Positions 15,521 to 62,372 of a stretch of 64,000 nucleotides of DNA are shown here, piece by piece. Made by a program: the position numbers and the translations under genes. The stretch lies in the NCBI GenBank assembly GCA_964036045.1, contig OZ038378.1, forward strand, positions 14,818,001 through 14,882,000, given 5' to 3'. The notes beneath the pieces are model-generated. The model did no database searches. It had not been told where the DNA came from and was given only the letters and a program-made list of their open reading frames with translations. The DNA comes from Eutreptiella sp. 'Long Island Sound 2002'. Taxonomy: Eukaryota > Protista > Euglenida. Each line of letters begins with the position of its first letter. Within the stretch, counting starts at the first letter, position 1.

Positions 15521-16460
15521 ATATATACGCATGCTGGTGGATAAAGCCCGGGTGTGGCATGAGATCCGTGGCAGGGTACACAATCCCTAGCTGTTTCCGA
15601 TGCCCACTGGCCTGCATGGTCACCAACCGCAAACGATCCCTGGCCATAGTAGGTATGACATGTACAGCTACATAAGATACCTGATTTATTGCGAATGAAA
15701 CAACACATAGTATAAAGTATACAGGGGGTACAGACAGTGTGTGGCCAGGGATTGGGGACAGCCACAAGCTGGATACGGGAGGAGGGGGGCCATCAACACG
15801 CTTTGTGTCATCATTGGCATGTCAAAGAAATACATGCTTCAAAGTGCATGGGTTCTGTTGGTCTTTGGGGCCGATGGCATTGGGTGGAAAGTAACAGTCT
15901 GAACTTTCAACTCTTTATTTTGTAATAAGAAGCCATATATATCACAGCCGTTTCTGGCCGTGCTATTGCAATGCAGCCTTAGCCGGAAAGCCTGACTTGC
16001 TTGGGTAACAGGAGGCTCCCCACAGGGCAGTTTCTCATCTCAGCAGCACTCGCGTGCTGCATCCCATGGGTGTGGTTCAGTGTGACATCTACGCAGCAGT
16101 GATGTGCATGCGGCATTAACAAGTTTGCGGCCGTTCCATGCATGCGCCCATGAGGGTGTTTCAATCGCACCGTGCGCCGCACCACGTGCTTTAGTAGACG
16201 CGTCATTTACCAATGTACACCCGTTTCCCACACACGGATGCGGTCCCGGGGGGCAACTACCAACGGTCCTGATGCGACCACCCCCCCAGCTATCTGCCAA
16301 AACTCGGGGGGGCAGTGGGGGGGGGGGGGGGGGTCCAGCCGAGGGTCGGGGGGCGGGTGTTCCTGCCGGGGGTCGGGAAGGGGGTGTTCCTGCCAGGGGT
16401 CGGGGGGGGGGCGTCTGGCCGGGGGTCAGGGGGGCGTCCAGCCAGGGGTGAGGGGGGGGG

Positions 16461-16481
16461 GGTTAAGGTTAGGGTTAAGGT
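16461..16481 (+). repeat. Interstitial telomere-like tract (GGTTAA/GGTTAG), left flank of the 16482-17598 element
   Basis: GGTTAAGGTTAGGGTTAAGGT read directly. Confidence 0.65.
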
Positions 16482-17598
16482 TACCGAGCTGGTGGAACCA
16501 GTCTTGGTTTTATAACCCTTTTTAGTGTCTAGGGTGGACCTATCAGGTTTAGCAGCAGCAGCAAGCAGCACGCGCGAAATGGGTAAAAATCAGAACTCCG
16601 TCGTGGTGCTTCAGATTCAGGTGAAATTTTGGTGGATGATACCTATGGGTGTGAAGTACAATCACATAAAGTTTGAGCAAGAACCTCAACGGTGGCGGCC
16701 GGGAATGGGATTCGCAAGTGGCAGACCTCAGTTTCAAAAACTGCAGTTTAGGGCCAAAAATAGCCATTTTTGGGCCAAAAAAAGCCCTGGAACACATTCA
16801 AAACGGCCAAACAAAGGGAAACGGTGGGTACACTCAACGTGCGGCTTGACTTCCCCGTGTCAACGAGCTCTTTGCGGCCCTCTAACTCCATGATATGTCC
16901 CGGAAACAGCCCAAAAAGGCCCCCAGAAGCTCCAAATGCCGACAGCCACAAACCAAGAATAGGCCATATCTTTGGCTACATGGCTCAAAATGCGATTCCG
17001 AGGGCACCTACTCCACCCGCAACCCCCCACTTTTTGTGGTTTCCACCCCTCAGAATTGCCCAAACGGACGCCTAGACCCCAATACCTAGGCCCACTAGGT
17101 TGCGGCAAGCTGCAAGCTCAAGCCCAAACAGGTGGGTGCCCAAATGGGTCAACAGGGTCCAGTAGGGGCAAAAAGATGACGTTTCTCAAAAATATCCTAG
17201 ACCATGTGCGACGCTAAAACAAGTGTTTTTGGACCGTTTTGAGCTTGTGGTGGCCCATTTTGGTCCTCCGAAAATCCCAGAATGCCTTGAAAATGGGCTG
17301 TTTTGGGACCAAAAATGGGTCAAAAATGGGTCAAAAACGAATTTTTCCAAACCTCATCCTAGACCATTTGGGTTGCACAAACGGGTGGAATGAGCCCATT
17401 TTGAACCCATTTTGGGGCATTTTGGCCCCTCAGAAGTCCAAAAAGCCTTGAAAGTGGGCCTCGTGGTGATGGGGTTCACTTGCAAACTGATTTCACTTTG
17501 TCAAGAGCCATCAATGTGTGAATCATTCTTGATGTCCCTCACTAGTCATAGCTGATGTTCCCTCCCCCACCAGCTCGGTCCCAATATTCAGTCTTGAT
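16482..17598 (+). mobile_element. Non-autonomous Helentron/Helitron2-like element (HINE-type), single copy
   Basis: Starts T-ACCGAGCTGGTGG. The reverse complement CCACCAGCTCGGT lies at 17567-17579, 19 nt before the end ...AGTCTTGA-T (asymmetric 13-bp subterminal IRs). It has a CAG/CAAG microsatellite near the 5' end and degenerate ~165-bp internal repeats. Head and tail are homologous to the 57.6-62.4 kb array unit. Confidence 0.7.
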
Positions 17599-17639
17599 TA
17601 GGGCTAGGGCTAGGGTTAGGGCTAGGGTTGTTGTTAGGG
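17599..17639 (+). repeat. Interstitial telomere-like tract (TTAGGG/CTAGGG), right flank of the element
   Basis: TAGGGCTAGGGCTAGGGTTAGGGCTAGGGTT read directly. Confidence 0.7.
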
Positions 17640-18559
17640 CCTGCAGCCCTCCTGTAGCCCTCCTTCAGGTCAAAAATTTTTCTTGTTGTTTTAACACAAA
17701 TATGATTTCTCTACAAAATTTTGAGTATTTTGAGTATAAACACATAGTATGGAAAAAAAAATTGGTGCCTTCGGCGCCGGACAGTTTTCTCTAGGGACAC
17801 TTGTTGAGGGCCGACCTGGCACCACTAGCTTTCAAAATCCGGGGGGGGGGGGGGGGGGGGCTTGGGGGGGGTCGCATACAAGGACCCAGCCCGGCTGCCC
17901 CCCCCCCGGGGATGCGGTGAGGGTTAGCAACAACAGTCGACTCCACTCCAAGGACGTCATCCCTGCTGCGCATCGGCTGCAACTACCACAGACTCGGTGG
18001 AGGTGCCATATGGTGGGGAGGCACAGGGCTCTAAGGCAGGAGAATCCGCAATAGGGAATGTGAGATGCTACACTGGGCAATCCTAGTATGGCTAGAGCGC
18101 TCATATCTAATAGCAATGCACTCGAGGAAGGACGAGAAGCCCACAACAGTGGAGGCACGCGCTCCATGCCTCTTAGATGAAAAAAATCACCTCCTGGCTT
18201 CAAGATGTCAGCATTCATTGCCATGTGCTCTGTGGAATACAAAGGAGGCAAAACATAGGAAAATCAATATTTCCGAATGTAAAATGTCCCTTGCAGCCCA
18301 CAAACACACCATACACATTTGCCTCTGGACAAAAATGTTGGTATTTCTCCCCAAACACAGCAATTGGCCACCCCTGTTGTCCAGTGCCCTATGATCGCTT
18401 TTGTGCAACATTCATTGTGACCATCGTTTGACGCCAGTTGGGCTTAAACCGCGCTGCGCACCCGCACCGCGCGAGCTGCACCCTCCATGGCATGTGTATG
18501 GCGGTGATATGCATGCGGCAGTATGATGTGCATGCGACAACAACATGCATGTGCCAGTG

Positions 18560-57593: not shown

Positions 57594-59545
57594 TACCGAA
57601 CTGGGTTTACCCTGTCAAGGTTTTACACCACCTTTTAGGGTCCAAGGGTGAGCTACACGTTTTAGCAGCAACAGCAGCAGCAGCAGCAAGCGTCAGGCGG
57701 TTAAAAAGTCCTTGCGACCACACCGCGGCTCAAAACCGGCATCCAAGTAGCTCAAAACGACCGGGGAGCAAAGGCGCATCACCACAAACAAGTTTCGTGC
57801 CGTTTCGAGCCGTCTAGCCCGTTCTATGGCCGATTTAGTGTCCAAAAATGGCCGTTTTGGGGCTGTTTTCGGCTGTTTTCAGGACGATCGTCCTGAAATT
57901 TCAGGACGATCGCCGCTACGCCAAGCAGGTGTTTCCGATGAGGGCCGTTGTTCTTTCATGGCGATTGGGCTATCAAAGGATGGCAAATGGGTGTTCAATA
58001 AGGCGTGTACCACGCCGTGGTGCCGCGCGGTGGTCCATTTTGAGGTAAAAATGAGCCGTTTCTGAGCCGTGTTTCAGGACAATCATCCTGACCGTGGAGG
58101 TACATCTGCAAAGCAAGCGGTCTTTCTTCAACGGTGATCTCCAATGCGTTACGCAAGACTAGGACCCAGCTCGGTCCTAGTTCGAGTCTTGATTACCGAG
58201 CTGGGTTTACCCTGTCGAGGTTTTACACCACCTTTTAGGGGCCAAGGATGAGCTACACGTTTTAGCAAGCAGCAAGCAGCAGCAAGCAGCAAGCAGCAAG
58301 CAGCAAGCAGGCGATTAAAAAGTCCTTGTGACCACACCGTGGCTCAAAACCGGCATCCAAGTAGCTCAAAACGACCGGGGAGCCAAGGCGCATCACCACA
58401 AACAAGTTTTGTTGCATTTCGAGCCGTCTAGCCCGTTCTATGGCCGATTTAGTGTGCAACAATGGCCGTTTTTAGGCTGTTTTCGGCTGTTTTCAGGACG
58501 ATCGTCCTGAAAGTTCAGGACGATCGCCGCTACGCCAAGCAGGTGTTTCCGATGAGGGCCGTTGTTCTTTCATGGCGATTGGGCTATCAAAGGATGGCAA
58601 ATGGGTGTTCAATAAGGCATGTACCACGCCGTGGTGCCACGCCGTGGTCCATTTTGAGGTAAAAATGAGCCGTTATTGAGTCGTGTTTCAGGACAATCGT
58701 CGTAACCATGGAGGCACATCTCTGATGCAAGCGGTCTTTCTTCAACGGTGATTTCCAATGCGTTACGCAAGACTAGGACCCAGCTCGGTCCTAGTTCGAG
58801 TCTTGATTACCGAGCTGGGTTTACCCTGTCGAGGTTTTACACCACCTTTTAGGGGCCAAGGATGAGCTACACATTTTTAGCGAGCTGGGTTTACCCTGTC
58901 GAGGTTTTACACCACCTTTTAGGGGCCAAGGCTGAGCAGCACGTTTTAGCAGCAGCAGCAAGCAAGCAGCAGCAGCAAGCAGCAACAGGCGAGTAAAAAG
59001 TCCTTGTGACGACACTGTGGCTCAAAACCGGCATCCAAGTAGCTCAAAACGACCGGGGAGCAAATGCGCATCACCGCAAACAAGTTTCGTTGCATTTTGA
59101 GCCGTCTAGGCCGTTCTACGGCCGATTTAGTGTCCAAAAATGGCCGTTTTGGGGCTGTTTTTAGGACGATCGTCCTGAAAACTCAGGACGATCGCCGGTG
59201 TGTCAAGTAGGTGTTTCCAATGAGGGCCGTTGTTCTTTCACAGCGATTGGGCTATCAAATGATGGCAAATGGGTGTTCAACAAGGCATGTACCATGCCGT
59301 GGTGCCACACCGTGGTCCATTTTGAGGTGAAAATGAGCCGTTTTTGAGCCATGTTTCAGGACGATCATCCTGACTGTGGAGGCAAATCTGCAAAGCAAGC
59401 GGTCTTTCATCTGCAGTGATTTCCAAGGCGTTACGCAAGACTAGGACCCAGCTCGGTCCTAGTTCGAGTCTTGATTACCGAGCTGGGTTTACCCTGTCAA
59501 GGTTTTACACCACCTTTTAGGGTCCAAGGGTGAGCAACACGTTTT

Positions 59546-59577
<32 letters not shown>

Positions 59578-62372
59578 GCGTCAGGCGAGTAAAAAGTCCT
59601 TGCGACGACACCGTGGCTCAAAACCGGCATCCAAGTAGCTCAAAACGACCGGGGAGCAAAGGCGCATCACCACAAACAAGTTTCGTGCCGTTTCGAGCCG
59701 TCTAGCCCGTTCTACGGCCGATTTAGTGTCCAAAAATGGCCGTTTTGGGGCTGTTTTCGGCTGTTTTCAGGACGATCGTCCTGAAATTTCAGGACGATCG
59801 CCGCTACGCCAAGCAAGTGTTTCCGATGAGGGCCGTTGTTCTTTCATGGCGATTGGGCTATCAAAGGATGACGAATGGGTGTTCAATAAGGCGTGTACCA
59901 CGCCGTGGTGCCACGCGGTGGTCCATTTTGAAGTGAAAATGAGCCGTTTTTGAGCCGTGTTTTAGCACAATCGTCGTGACCGTGGAGGTACATCCCTAAA
60001 GCAAGCGGTCTTTCTTCAACGGTGATTTCCAATGCGTTACGCAAGACTAGGACCCAGCTCGGTCCTAGTTCGAGTCTTGATTACCGAGCTGGGTTTACCC
60101 TGTCGAGGTTTTACACCACCTTTTAGGGTCCAAGGGTGAGCAGCACGTTTTAGCAGCAGCAAGCAGCAGCAGCAGCAAGCAGCAAGCAGAAGGTCCAAAA
60201 GTCCTTGTGACCACACCGTGGCTCAAAACCGGCATCCAAGTAGCTCAAAACGACCGGAGAGCCAAGGCGCATCAGCACAACCAAGTTTCGTTGCATTTTG
60301 AGCCGTCTAGCCCACTCTATGGCCCATTTGGTGTCCAAAAATGGCCGTTTTTGGGCAGTTTTTAGGACGATCGTCCTAAAAACTCAGGACGATCGCCGGT
60401 GTGTCAAGTGCGCATTTGCAATAAGGGCCGTTGTTCTTCCATGGCGATTGGGCAATCAAATGATGGCAAATGGGTGTTGAACAAGGCATGTACCATGCCG
60501 TGGTGCCACACGGGGGTCCATTTTGTGGTAAAAATGAGCCGTTTTTGAGCCGTGTTTTGGGACAATTGTCCTCACCGTGGAGGCACATCTCAAAAGCAAG
60601 CAGTTTTTCCTCCGAGGTGATTTCCAATGCGTTACACAAGACTAGGACCCAGCTCGGTCCTAGTTCGAGTCTTGAGTACCGAGCTGGGTTTACCGTGTCG
60701 AGGTTTTACACCACCTTTTAGGGGCCAAGGGTGAGCAACACGTTTCAGCAGCAGCAGCAAGCATCAGGCGAGTAAAAAGTCCTTGCGACGACACCGTGGG
60801 TGAAAACCGGCATCCAAGTAGCTCAAAACGACTGGGGAGCCAAGGCGCATCACCACAATCAAGTTTCGTTACATTTCTAGCCGTCTAGCCCGTTCTACGG
60901 CCGATTTAGTGTCCAACAATGGCCGTTTTTGGGCTGTTTTCGGCTGTTTTCGGGACGATCGTCCTGAAAACTCACGACGATCGCCGGTGTGTCAAGTGGG
61001 CGTTTGCAATGAGGGCCGTTGTTCTTCCATGGCGATTGGGCTATGAAATGATGGCAAATGGGAGTTCAATAAGGCGTGTACCACGCCGTGGTGAAAATGA
61101 GCCGTTTTTGAGCCATGTTTCAAGACGATCGTCCTGACCGTGGAGGCACATGTGCAAAGCAAGCGGTCTTTCTTGAAAGGTGATCTCCGATGCGTGACGC
61201 AAGACTAGGACCCAGCTCGGTCCTAATTCGAGTCTTGATTACCGAGCTCGGTTTACCCTGTCGAGGTTTTACACCACCTTTTAGGGTCCAAGGGTGAGCA
61301 ACAACTTTTAGCAGCAGCAGCAGCAGCAACAGCAACAACTAGCAAGCAGGCGAGTAAAAAGTCCTTGCGACCACACCGTGGCTCAAAACCGGCATCCAAG
61401 TAGCTCAAAACGACCCAGGAGCCAAGGCGCATCAGCACAAACAAGTTTCGTTGCATTTCGAGCCGTCTAGCCCGTTCTACGGCCGATTTAGTGTCCAAAA
61501 ATGGCCGTTTTGGGGCTGTTTTCGGCTGTTTTCAGGACGATCGTCCTGAAATTTCAGGACGATCGCCGCTACGCCAAGCAGGTGTTTCCGATGAGGGCCG
61601 TTGTTCTTTCATGGCGATTGGGCTATCAAAGGATGGCACATGGGTGTTCAATAAGGCGTGTACCACGCCGTGGTGCCGCGCCGTGGTCCATTTTGAGGTA
61701 AAAATGAGCCGTTTCTGAGCCGTGTTTCAGCACAATCGTCGTGACCGTGGAGGTACATCTGCAAAGCAAGCGGTCTTTCTTCAACGGTGATTTCCAATGC
61801 GTTACGCAAGACTAGGACCCAGCTCGGTCCTAGTTCGAGTCTTGATAGCAAGTAGCAAGCAGCAGCAGTAGCAGCAGCAGCAACAAGCAGCAACAGGCGA
61901 GTAAAAAGTCCTAGCAATGACACCGTGGCTCAAAAACTGCATCCAAGTAGCTCAAAACGACCGGGCAGCAAACGCGCATCACCACGAACAAGTTTCGTGC
62001 CGTTTCGAGGCATCTAGCCCGTTCTACAGCCAATTTAGTGTCCAAAAATGGCCGTTATGGGGCTGTTCTTAGGACGATCGTCCTGAAAGTTCAGGACGAT
62101 CGCCGGTGTGCCAAGTAGGTGTTCCCAATGGGGGCCGTTGTTCTTTCATAGCGATTGGGCTATCAAATGATGGCAAACGAGTGTTCAATAAGGCATGTAC
62201 CATGCCGTGGTGCCACGCGGTGGTCCATTTGGAGGTGACAATAAGCCTTTTTTGCCGTTTTTCAAGACAATTGTCCTTACCGTGGAAGCACATCTCCAAA
62301 GCAAGCAGTCTTTCCTCGACGGTGATTTCAAATGCGCGTTACACAAGACTAGGACCCAGCTCGGTCCTAGTT
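57594..62372 (+). repeat. Head-to-tail array of eight ~600-bp HINE-like units
   Basis: Unit starts at 57594, 58194, 58808, 59476, 60082, 60677, 61240 and ~61847 (head deleted). Each has 12-bp subterminal IRs ACCGAGCTGGGT/ACCCAGCTCGGT, a 9-bp stem ACTAGGACC/GGTCCTAGT and a variable CAG/CAAG microsatellite. Unit 3 has a 70-bp internal duplication. Confidence 0.95.

Follow-up and report, generated by a model that had tools for sequence, protein, structure and literature searches.

The window analysed here, a stretch of 64,000 nucleotides of the euglenid Eutreptiella sp. 'Long Island Sound 2002' (contig OZ038378.1, positions 14,818,001 to 14,882,000), contains a non-coding element of 1117 bp (16482-17598; all window features are given on the forward strand) that interrupts a telomere-like tract. 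The family of this element, here called family A, is probably a non-autonomous rolling-circle transposon of the Helitron2 type. It has ~9,000 copies in the 2.28-Gb assembly, and the comparison of empty and filled sites described below supports TTAGGG-like tracts as its real target. Around the element the window reads ...GGTTAAGGT / TACCGAGCTGGTGG ... CCACCAGCTCGGTCCCAATATTCAGTCTTGAT / TAGGGCTAGGG..., in which the slashes mark the junctions, as they do in the junction sequences below. Excision of 16482-17598 in silico yields GGTTAAGGT-TAGGGCTAGGG, an unbroken telomere-like tract, in agreement with an earlier note on this DNA. The left part of the tract (16463-16481), which forms the 5' flank, follows a G-rich 27-bp minisatellite and consists of TTAAGG TTAGGG TTAAGG T; the right part (17599-17639), the 3' flank, reads TAGGG CTAGGG CTAGGG TTAGGG CTAGGG and merges into the right arm of a host transposon, H. 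Owing to the periodicity of the tract, the sequence does not fix the cut register, and the junctions agree equally well with T^T and GGG^TTA; the coordinates are drawn for T^T.

Structure, abundance and target of family A

The 5' end of the element is formed by an asymmetric terminal inverted repeat, ACCGAGCTGGTGG (16483-16495), which lies 1-2 nt from the junction, and its counterpart CCACCAGCTCGGT (17567-17579) is subterminal, 18-19 nt from the 3' end in the family and 19 nt in the window copy. Both arms are 13 nt long and 100% complementary. The entire 5' repeat is taken into a hairpin formed by ACCGAGCTGGT and ACCAGTCTTGGT (16483-16508), the folding energy of which is -9.6 kcal/mol (z = -2.7); none of 200 shuffled sequences folds equally well. 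A CAG/CAAG microsatellite (16553-16571), which is also present in the array family B and behind the 5' end of the group-3 Helitrons described below, precedes a core (16672-17460) that is ~75% identical to a 5' untranslated module of the same Helitrons. The 3' tail (17580-17598) has the terminal motif AGTCTTGAT, which is common to families A, B and C, and the conserved 3' terminus of family A is ...AGTCTTGA(T). Copies of the family mostly start with C (CACCGAG, ~97 of 100), and the window copy starts with T, a rarer variant. The asymmetric inverted repeats, the 5' hairpin and the microsatellite uphold the rolling-circle-type architecture proposed in the earlier note. A Pfam search with seven open reading frames (ORFs) of the window yielded a zinc knuckle only, and an Rfam search of the window gave no match. 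The matches retrieved from a protein atlas were helicases of Helitrons in many phyla.

In the genome, the 3' end motif has 9,859 matches, mostly family A, as against 0 in a reversed control, divided into 4,893 on the forward and 4,966 on the reverse strand, and 5' ends have 6,801 matches with a filter that keeps three in four. The density of family A, ~4 per Mb, is even over the first 30 Mb of contig 1 (C1), and hence there is no subtelomeric bias in this sample. The subtelomeric location suggested earlier does not apply to the window copy either, since its tract is a microsatellite inside a transposon with terminal inverted repeats (TIRs), 14.8 Mb along a 201-Mb contig.

The flanks of 100 5' ends and 100 3' ends, taken from the first ~30 Mb of contig 1, show the expected enrichment of TTAGGG. 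TAGGGT immediately precedes CACCGAG in 86 of the 100 5' flanks, 11 more have at most one mismatch, and the remaining 3 are internal rearrangements. On the 3' side, TTAG opens 90 of 100 flanks and TTAGGG 69 of 100, and just two are unrelated. With respect to the G-rich strand, about 100 of 100 flanks show the same orientation, while the chromosomal orientation varies. About 45-49 per hundred flanks are head-to-tail junctions to the next copy, with spacers of 7, 13, 19 or more nt that correspond to TTAGGG units plus T. Among the non-tandem 3' flanks, 56 in number, 13 are in H, 14 in the host repeat H2, 3 in the host repeat H3 and ~26 in other contexts, many of them unique. Some copies have scant telomere-like sequence on one side (...CACGTAGGGT/, ...GTTGAGGT/, /TAG+TCAAG), and the 5' side is merely TAGGGT or GAGGT at C1:23970500 and C1:9131588. 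These sequences suggest a minimal target requirement of about AGGGT^TAG. A tail-to-tail pair of family A copies is present at C1:17834194-17834270, with a change of strand in the intervening tract (TTAGGGTTA/CCCTAACC).

The window copy resides in H (16245-17911), a non-coding TIR transposon of 1.67 kb with the insert and ~550 bp without it, the arms of which occupy 16245-16462 and 17640-17911. H is bordered by a 7-bp target duplication, ATGCGGT, on the left (16238-16244) and on the right (17912-17918), and another H copy, L015, has CCCCAGT on both sides. Imperfect terminal inverted repeats of ~45 nt, poly-G runs, the G-rich 27-bp minisatellite and an internal TTAGGG-like tract characterize H, so that it has both the symmetric terminal repeats and the fixed-length duplication of a TIR (DDE) transposon. 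The family has ~2,000 copies (1,947 first-look candidates for the right arm, at 92-95% identity). In all of the 226 copies with an exact left anchor, poly-G is followed by TTAGGG-type units, and the 5' end of the element appears after 2, 3, 4, 5, 7 or 8 units, or else is absent from the 63 nt covered. About two thirds of them carry family A, most often after exactly two units. In eight H copies, a short uninterrupted tract runs straight into the right arm, with no element.

The most direct evidence on the target comes from H3, of which 123 copies have both arms and no element between them. The empty arm-to-arm match is 68 nt in ~90% of these and otherwise 62, 67 or 74 nt; a match of 68 nt corresponds to a gap of 39 nt, which varies in steps of six. 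At least 28 empty H3 sites open with three or more perfect TTAGGG units after the left arm. Measured between the same anchors, the left flank of the filled H3 copy L024 has 16 bases and its right flank has 23, 39 in all. Because the empty gap equals the two filled flanks, the insertion added and removed no bases and the tract of five units existed before it; and because an empty site has the length of a filled one after subtraction of the element, the repeats are a target and not a part of the element, and no duplication was generated. From copy to copy, the tract varies in length and in its variant units (CTAGGG, TTAAGG, TTAGCCCTAGGG), and this variation accords with the host repeat. The claim of a seamless insertion into TT without target site duplication is thereby substantiated, and the possibility that the tracts belong to the element consensus, by which the earlier note would have been refuted, is answered by H3 and by the empty H copies. 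Neither target site duplications nor a DDE partner, named there as a further refutation, appeared.

Alternative readings and the mobility of family A

It might be argued that the TTAGGG units are terminal microsatellites of the element, carried between sites whose true sequence is unrelated. In accordance with this, solitary copies usually have two or three 5' units even in unique DNA, TTAG after TCTTGA may lack a telomere-like continuation (TTAG/TGATG, TTAG/TCAAG, TTAG/CTGTTG), and one junction in another copy contains a GGT that is not in the target. Helentrons are known to carry variable numbers of flanking T (Thomas et al., PMC4067079), and some co-mobilisation of flank units is conceivable. 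Such transport as a general explanation is very unlikely, however, since the empty H3 tract already has the summed length of the filled-site flanks, H copies hold the tract without the element, the length and the variants of the tract match the host repeat rather than the element, and some copies have only the TAGGGT or GAGGT mentioned above on the 5' side. A perfect inverted repeat of 13 nt, the lack of coding capacity and the tandem arrays would also suit an ordinary TIR (DDE) miniature inverted-repeat transposable element or a satellite monomer, for which the inverted repeats and the telomere-like flanks would be incidental. Such an identity is extremely improbable in view of the asymmetry of the repeats (1-2 nt as against 19 nt from the ends), the conserved 3' tail inside the boundary, the lack of target duplication, the orientation fixed relative to the G-strand, the dispersal of thousands of copies and the homology of the core to a Helitron untranslated region. 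A short interspersed nuclear element or other retroposon is rejected for the absence of poly(A) and of a duplication, and telomerase addition to a linear intermediate is rejected as the empty sites already contain the tract.

A further explanation concerns the route of spread. The window copy might be a passenger in a composite H::A moved by the TIR transposase of H, and the family might have spread largely by hitch-hiking with H, H2 and H3 and by tandem amplification. H does have TIRs and a 7-bp duplication at the window locus, arms of H, H2 or H3 account for ~30 of the 56 non-tandem 3' flanks, the filled two thirds of the exact-left-anchor H copies most commonly have the element after exactly two units, and arrays with identical odd spacers (C1 at 14.12, 22.17 and 27.99 Mb) show tandem amplification. 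On the other hand, the position of insertion in the H tract varies, neither the left tract of the window copy, TTAAGGTTAGGGTTAAGGT, nor its T variant of the first base recurs in another listed H copy, many copies have unique flanks, and the copies inside H belong to different, well supported lineages of the element, which together make this explanation unlikely. It concerns the history of one locus and is compatible with targeted insertion of family A. In a maximum-likelihood tree of 27 full family A copies (mean pairwise identity 94%), the copies inside H (the window copy, L015 and L022) are not monophyletic, and L015 falls in a clade of 100/100 support with copies from two arrays and one in an H2 context.

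The same tree bears on the growth of arrays. Two units of one array, L002a and L002b, fall in two different clades of 100/100 support, and the units of the arrays L005a-L008b (five) and L020a/b plus L021b (three) are scattered, with partners elsewhere at 99-100% support. Because units of the same array belong to separate clades, these arrays are ascribed to repeated independent insertion beside a resident copy. Three other arrays (C1:14122354-14133029, 22173965-22183328 and 27989628-28004877) are satellite-like; the one at 14122354-14133029 is just 0.7 Mb upstream of the window. In two of the three, nine or more consecutive units are separated by an identical odd spacer (TTAGCCCTAAAGTTAGGGT or TTAGGGTAAGGGT), and in one there is a higher-order pattern of three spacer types, and therefore tandem amplification built these arrays. 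Both ways of array growth operate.

Several observations weigh against a site-specific rolling-circle insertion of family A. The 3' tail gives no hairpin on folding (z = -0.1), and neither ACCGAGCTGG or ACCGAG nor AGTCTTGA is found at the ends of any of seven RepHel elements from three families. A junction inside an A copy, GTTTAG/GGT/CACC at C1:17833001, is not seamless, and an 11-bp direct duplication, CTATCATAGGG, brackets a family A array (C1:16346986-16352299). What was read of the empty H3 sites is the match length and the first 35 nt. In each of the three filled H3 copies seen, two units precede the element, and a single event, later copied, may underlie all three; recombination between the flanking repeats could also, in principle, have produced empty copies of H or H3 by deletion. 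A possible duplication of 5-6 bp (TGATGT) is also seen at L012; this and the duplication of CTATCATAGGG are reminiscent of the duplications of variable length that accompany one-ended transposition of Helitron2 in Chlamydomonas (PMC3627910).

Sister families and the Helitrons of the genome

The ends of family A recur within the window in an array of eight head-to-tail units of ~600 bp (57594-62372), family B, the junctions of which read TCTTGAT/TACCGAG. ACCGAGCTGG occurs 15 times in the window, as against 0.16 expected, and AGTCTTGAT 7 times, as against 0.41 expected, and all occurrences outside the family A element fall in this array, the shared ends of which the earlier note had recognized. 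The last unit (61847-62372) is truncated at both ends: it begins at the microsatellite and its final 11 nt are missing. The array also includes a partial duplication of 70 bp of the 5' end at 58808-58877 (Tandem Repeats Finder, 96% match). Families A and B are alike only over ~90 nt at the start and ~30 nt at the end. They differ at positions 11-12 of the repeat in both arms and keep the complementarity (TGG with CCA in the one, GT with AC in the other). The claim of compensatory change consequently holds between the two families, where it rests on two positions, but not within a family, where the usable pairs show only pair-breaking changes. In family B the 5' hairpin is weak (z = 0.15), and a strong hairpin of the 3' tail (z = -2.8) encloses the repeat rather than following it.

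The non-tandem 5' flanks of family B (361 matches, with the three-in-four filter) are ordinary sequence. In about half of them, the bases before TTACCGAG are GG, where roughly one in ten would be expected, and one flank consists of an A copy with TTAGGG after it. The four readable 3' flanks start with TTAT, TTAG, TTTG and TAAT. As far as the sequences indicate, family B has the junction of family A, GG(T)/YACCGAG, without the requirement for a telomere repeat, and it stacks without a spacer. The idea of a single system that exploits TTAGGG repeats therefore holds for family A but not for the array family, which is usually found as ...GG/TTACCGAG in ordinary sequence. A third family, C, of ~1.4 kb (L027, reverse strand, 134-1527), has a 3' end of the type CAGCTCGGTCCTAGTCGCAAGTCTTGA and B-like internal segments, and its 5' flank is degenerate telomere-like (GGGTAGGGTCACAGT/CACCGAGCTC).

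A genome search with PF14214 detected many intact RepHel ORFs of 1,500-2,600 aa, and seven RepHel elements from three families were compared with family A as possible autonomous partners. Group 1 (L053/L055) is a canonical Helitron that ends in a hairpin followed by CTAGT. Group 2 has an ORF of ~2,000 aa; in two of its loci, CCCTAACCCTAAC is conserved ~140 nt past the RepHel stop codon (L049:10019-10031 and L051:10501-10513) and is internal to the element. Group 3 has an intact ORF of 2,500-2,600 aa, in which weaker Rep and PIF1 matches are followed by SAP and DnaJ (J-domain) matches. Its loci (L045:4290-10000 with L046:1-1894, and also L043/L044 and L047/L048) are 98-99% identical to one another. 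The 5' end of group 3 abuts (TA)n, with up to ~45 units in L043, and three repeated hairpin modules are present at its 3' end. When the termini of families A and B were compared with the Helitron loci by BLAST, only microsatellites matched, and a domain scan of the three RepHel families detected no AP endonuclease.

Positions 191-979 of the family A element are ~75% identical to the repeated module of the 5' untranslated region of group 3, in the same orientation as the ORF, and this module follows the 5' end and a CAAGCAA microsatellite. Because the core is homologous, family A is taken to be a derivative of the group-3 lineage or of a close relative, with different termini. The RepHel ORF with the same ends that the earlier note called for was not encountered among the seven elements, and its Helentron/HINE label is not supported: the three RepHel families have neither an AP endonuclease nor these ends, and the 3' repeat is 19 nt, not 38-60, from the end. 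Since no endonuclease or matching RepHel was found in these families, a Helitron2-like identity fits better than a Helentron.

Relation to known systems and a possible mechanism

Helitron2 elements have terminal inverted repeats that are asymmetric and 8-15 bp long, 0-2 bp away from the end on the 5' side and ~20-30 bp away on the 3' side, with a 5' hairpin formed from the 5' repeat and a 3' hairpin directly downstream of the 3' repeat (PMC3627910). They insert at T^T or T^C without duplication, and their termini recur in the autonomous partner, a RepHel from the Helitron2 clade; an example of the non-autonomous elements in Bao and Jurka (2013) is Helitron-1N1_CRe of Chlamydomonas, with the target TTTT^T/C (PMC3627910). 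Family A resembles them in its asymmetric repeats of 13 nt and in the 5' hairpin formed from the 5' repeat, in the compensatory changes between related families, in a copy number that is high relative to autonomous partners, and in a sequence-specific scarless insertion next to T, with the GGGT^TAGGG junction in 86-90 of 100 flanks; the 3' repeat, 18-19 nt from the end in families A and B, is slightly under the range stated for Helitron2. Unlike Helitron2, family A has a hexameric telomere-type repeat in one phase as the target, array spacers of 6n nt composed of TTAGGG units, no hairpin behind the 3' repeat and no partner with its ends among the seven RepHel elements. HINE (DINE-1) elements have subterminal inverted repeats of 12-15 bp and a microsatellite and insert at TT without duplication; their 3' repeat is 38-60 bp from the end and is followed by a palindrome of 5-10 bp, and the partner is a Rep-helicase-AP endonuclease protein (Thomas et al. 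2014, PMC4067079). The repeats of 13 nt, the internal microsatellite, the insertion at TT without duplication, the tandem arrays and the very high copy number of family A are similar to these, whereas its 3' repeat is 19 nt from the end, a palindrome is absent, and the RepHel families examined have either SAP and a J-domain or nothing additional at the end. Family A also differs from canonical Helitron1 (5' TC, 3' CTRR with a subterminal hairpin, A^T target) in that it ends with TCTTGA(T) and targets G/T^T.

In the literature searched, there is one clear precedent for the choice of telomere repeats as a target by Helitrons, namely the telomere-capping Helitrons of Paramecium (BMC Biol 2026, PMC13085455). 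They have telomeric repeats of variable length on both sides, which were judged to be the target; they are autonomous, form a separate RepHel clade, are located at the extreme germline chromosome ends and are read as insertions into the C-rich strand (PMC13085455). Family A is similar to them in that its orientation is fixed relative to the repeat strand and internal blocks of telomeric repeats are created, and the grounds for calling the flanking repeats a target rather than a part of the element are the same. In contrast, family A is non-coding and occurs at ~4 per Mb, dispersed over short interstitial tracts in either orientation on the chromosome, and is continuous with the G-rich strand. 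In the first 0.6 Mb of contig 1 (C1:10412-590061), (CCCTAA)n is found as about a dozen separate tracts, each oriented as expected at a left chromosome end. They recall the same-polarity internal telomere blocks described for Paramecium; the remainder of the first 37 Mb has ~30 such tracts of mixed orientation. Helitrons at Drosophila biarmipes telomeres and cnidarian subtelomeres, in the passages of PMC13085455 and PMC11934779 that cite them, are not presented as repeat-specific insertions. A literature search for Helitrons of euglenids retrieved nothing.

Non-long-terminal-repeat retrotransposons of the TRAS and SART types in Bombyx insert at one fixed position and in one orientation within telomeric repeats and are stacked head to tail. 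Their transposition is RNA-mediated and employs their own endonuclease and reverse transcriptase, with poly(A) or a target duplication. The fixed phase and orientation of family A and its stacks with short repeat tracts in between are reminiscent of TRAS and SART, but features of RNA mediation, enzymes of its own, poly(A) and a target duplication are all absent. The bacterial IS200/IS605 elements, such as IS608, insert in a strand-specific and scarless manner 3' of a short fixed sequence, have subterminal hairpins and transpose via single-stranded DNA; a Y1 transposase is employed, and the target is recognised by base pairing with a guide beside the hairpin. Family A has in common with them the strand-specific scarless insertion and a subterminal hairpin, and presumably also transposition via single-stranded DNA. 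The target guide is known in IS200/IS605, whereas in family A a heptamer, TAACCCT, is a candidate only.

A possible mechanism may be outlined as follows. A RepHel protein made elsewhere in the genome would mobilise family A; we infer this enzyme and its specificity because no RepHel with family A ends was found among the seven elements. Its HUH nuclease would nick the single-stranded G-strand at about AGGGT^TAG and join the element there, and pairing of the two inverted repeats might help to set the end point of replication, as has been proposed for Helitron2 (PMC3627910). As the sequences show, insertion occurs in one orientation on the G-rich strand and in one fixed phase, GGGT^TAGGG (or GGG^TTAGGG), with no bases gained or lost, and in the window the target is the internal microsatellite of the TIR transposon H. 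Repeated insertion into units adjoining resident copies produces head-to-tail arrays with spacers of 6, 12 or 18 nt, some of which are then amplified in tandem. Family B makes do with about GG^TT, so that it inserts into ordinary sequence and forms stacks that lack spacers.

The choice of target might even be made by base pairing. TAACCCT lies directly 3' of the 5' hairpin in every copy (16514-16520 in the window) and is the exact complement of AGGGT^TA across the insertion point; family B, which lands after ...GG(T), has ACCCT at the corresponding place (58210-58214). A given 7-mer is expected anywhere in 1.1 kb with a chance of ~7%, and TAACCCT could have arisen in that way. That family A would recognise its target by means of a guide in the style of IS200/IS605, and not by protein contacts alone, is quite doubtful. 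If it did, guide pairing would make the target reprogrammable and would explain why sister families have different targets in spite of their common ends.

Site-specific DNA transposons are rare in eukaryotes, and the target choice of the Helitron nuclease is still unsettled. Thousands of insertions in one phase, together with a sister family that has the same ends and a looser target, provide a ready comparison for target recognition by RepHel. The behaviour reported at the chromosome ends of Paramecium in 2026 is extended here to a different type of Helitron and to chromosome interiors, where interstitial telomere-type tracts can become nurseries of satellite-like arrays, by homing and then tandem amplification.

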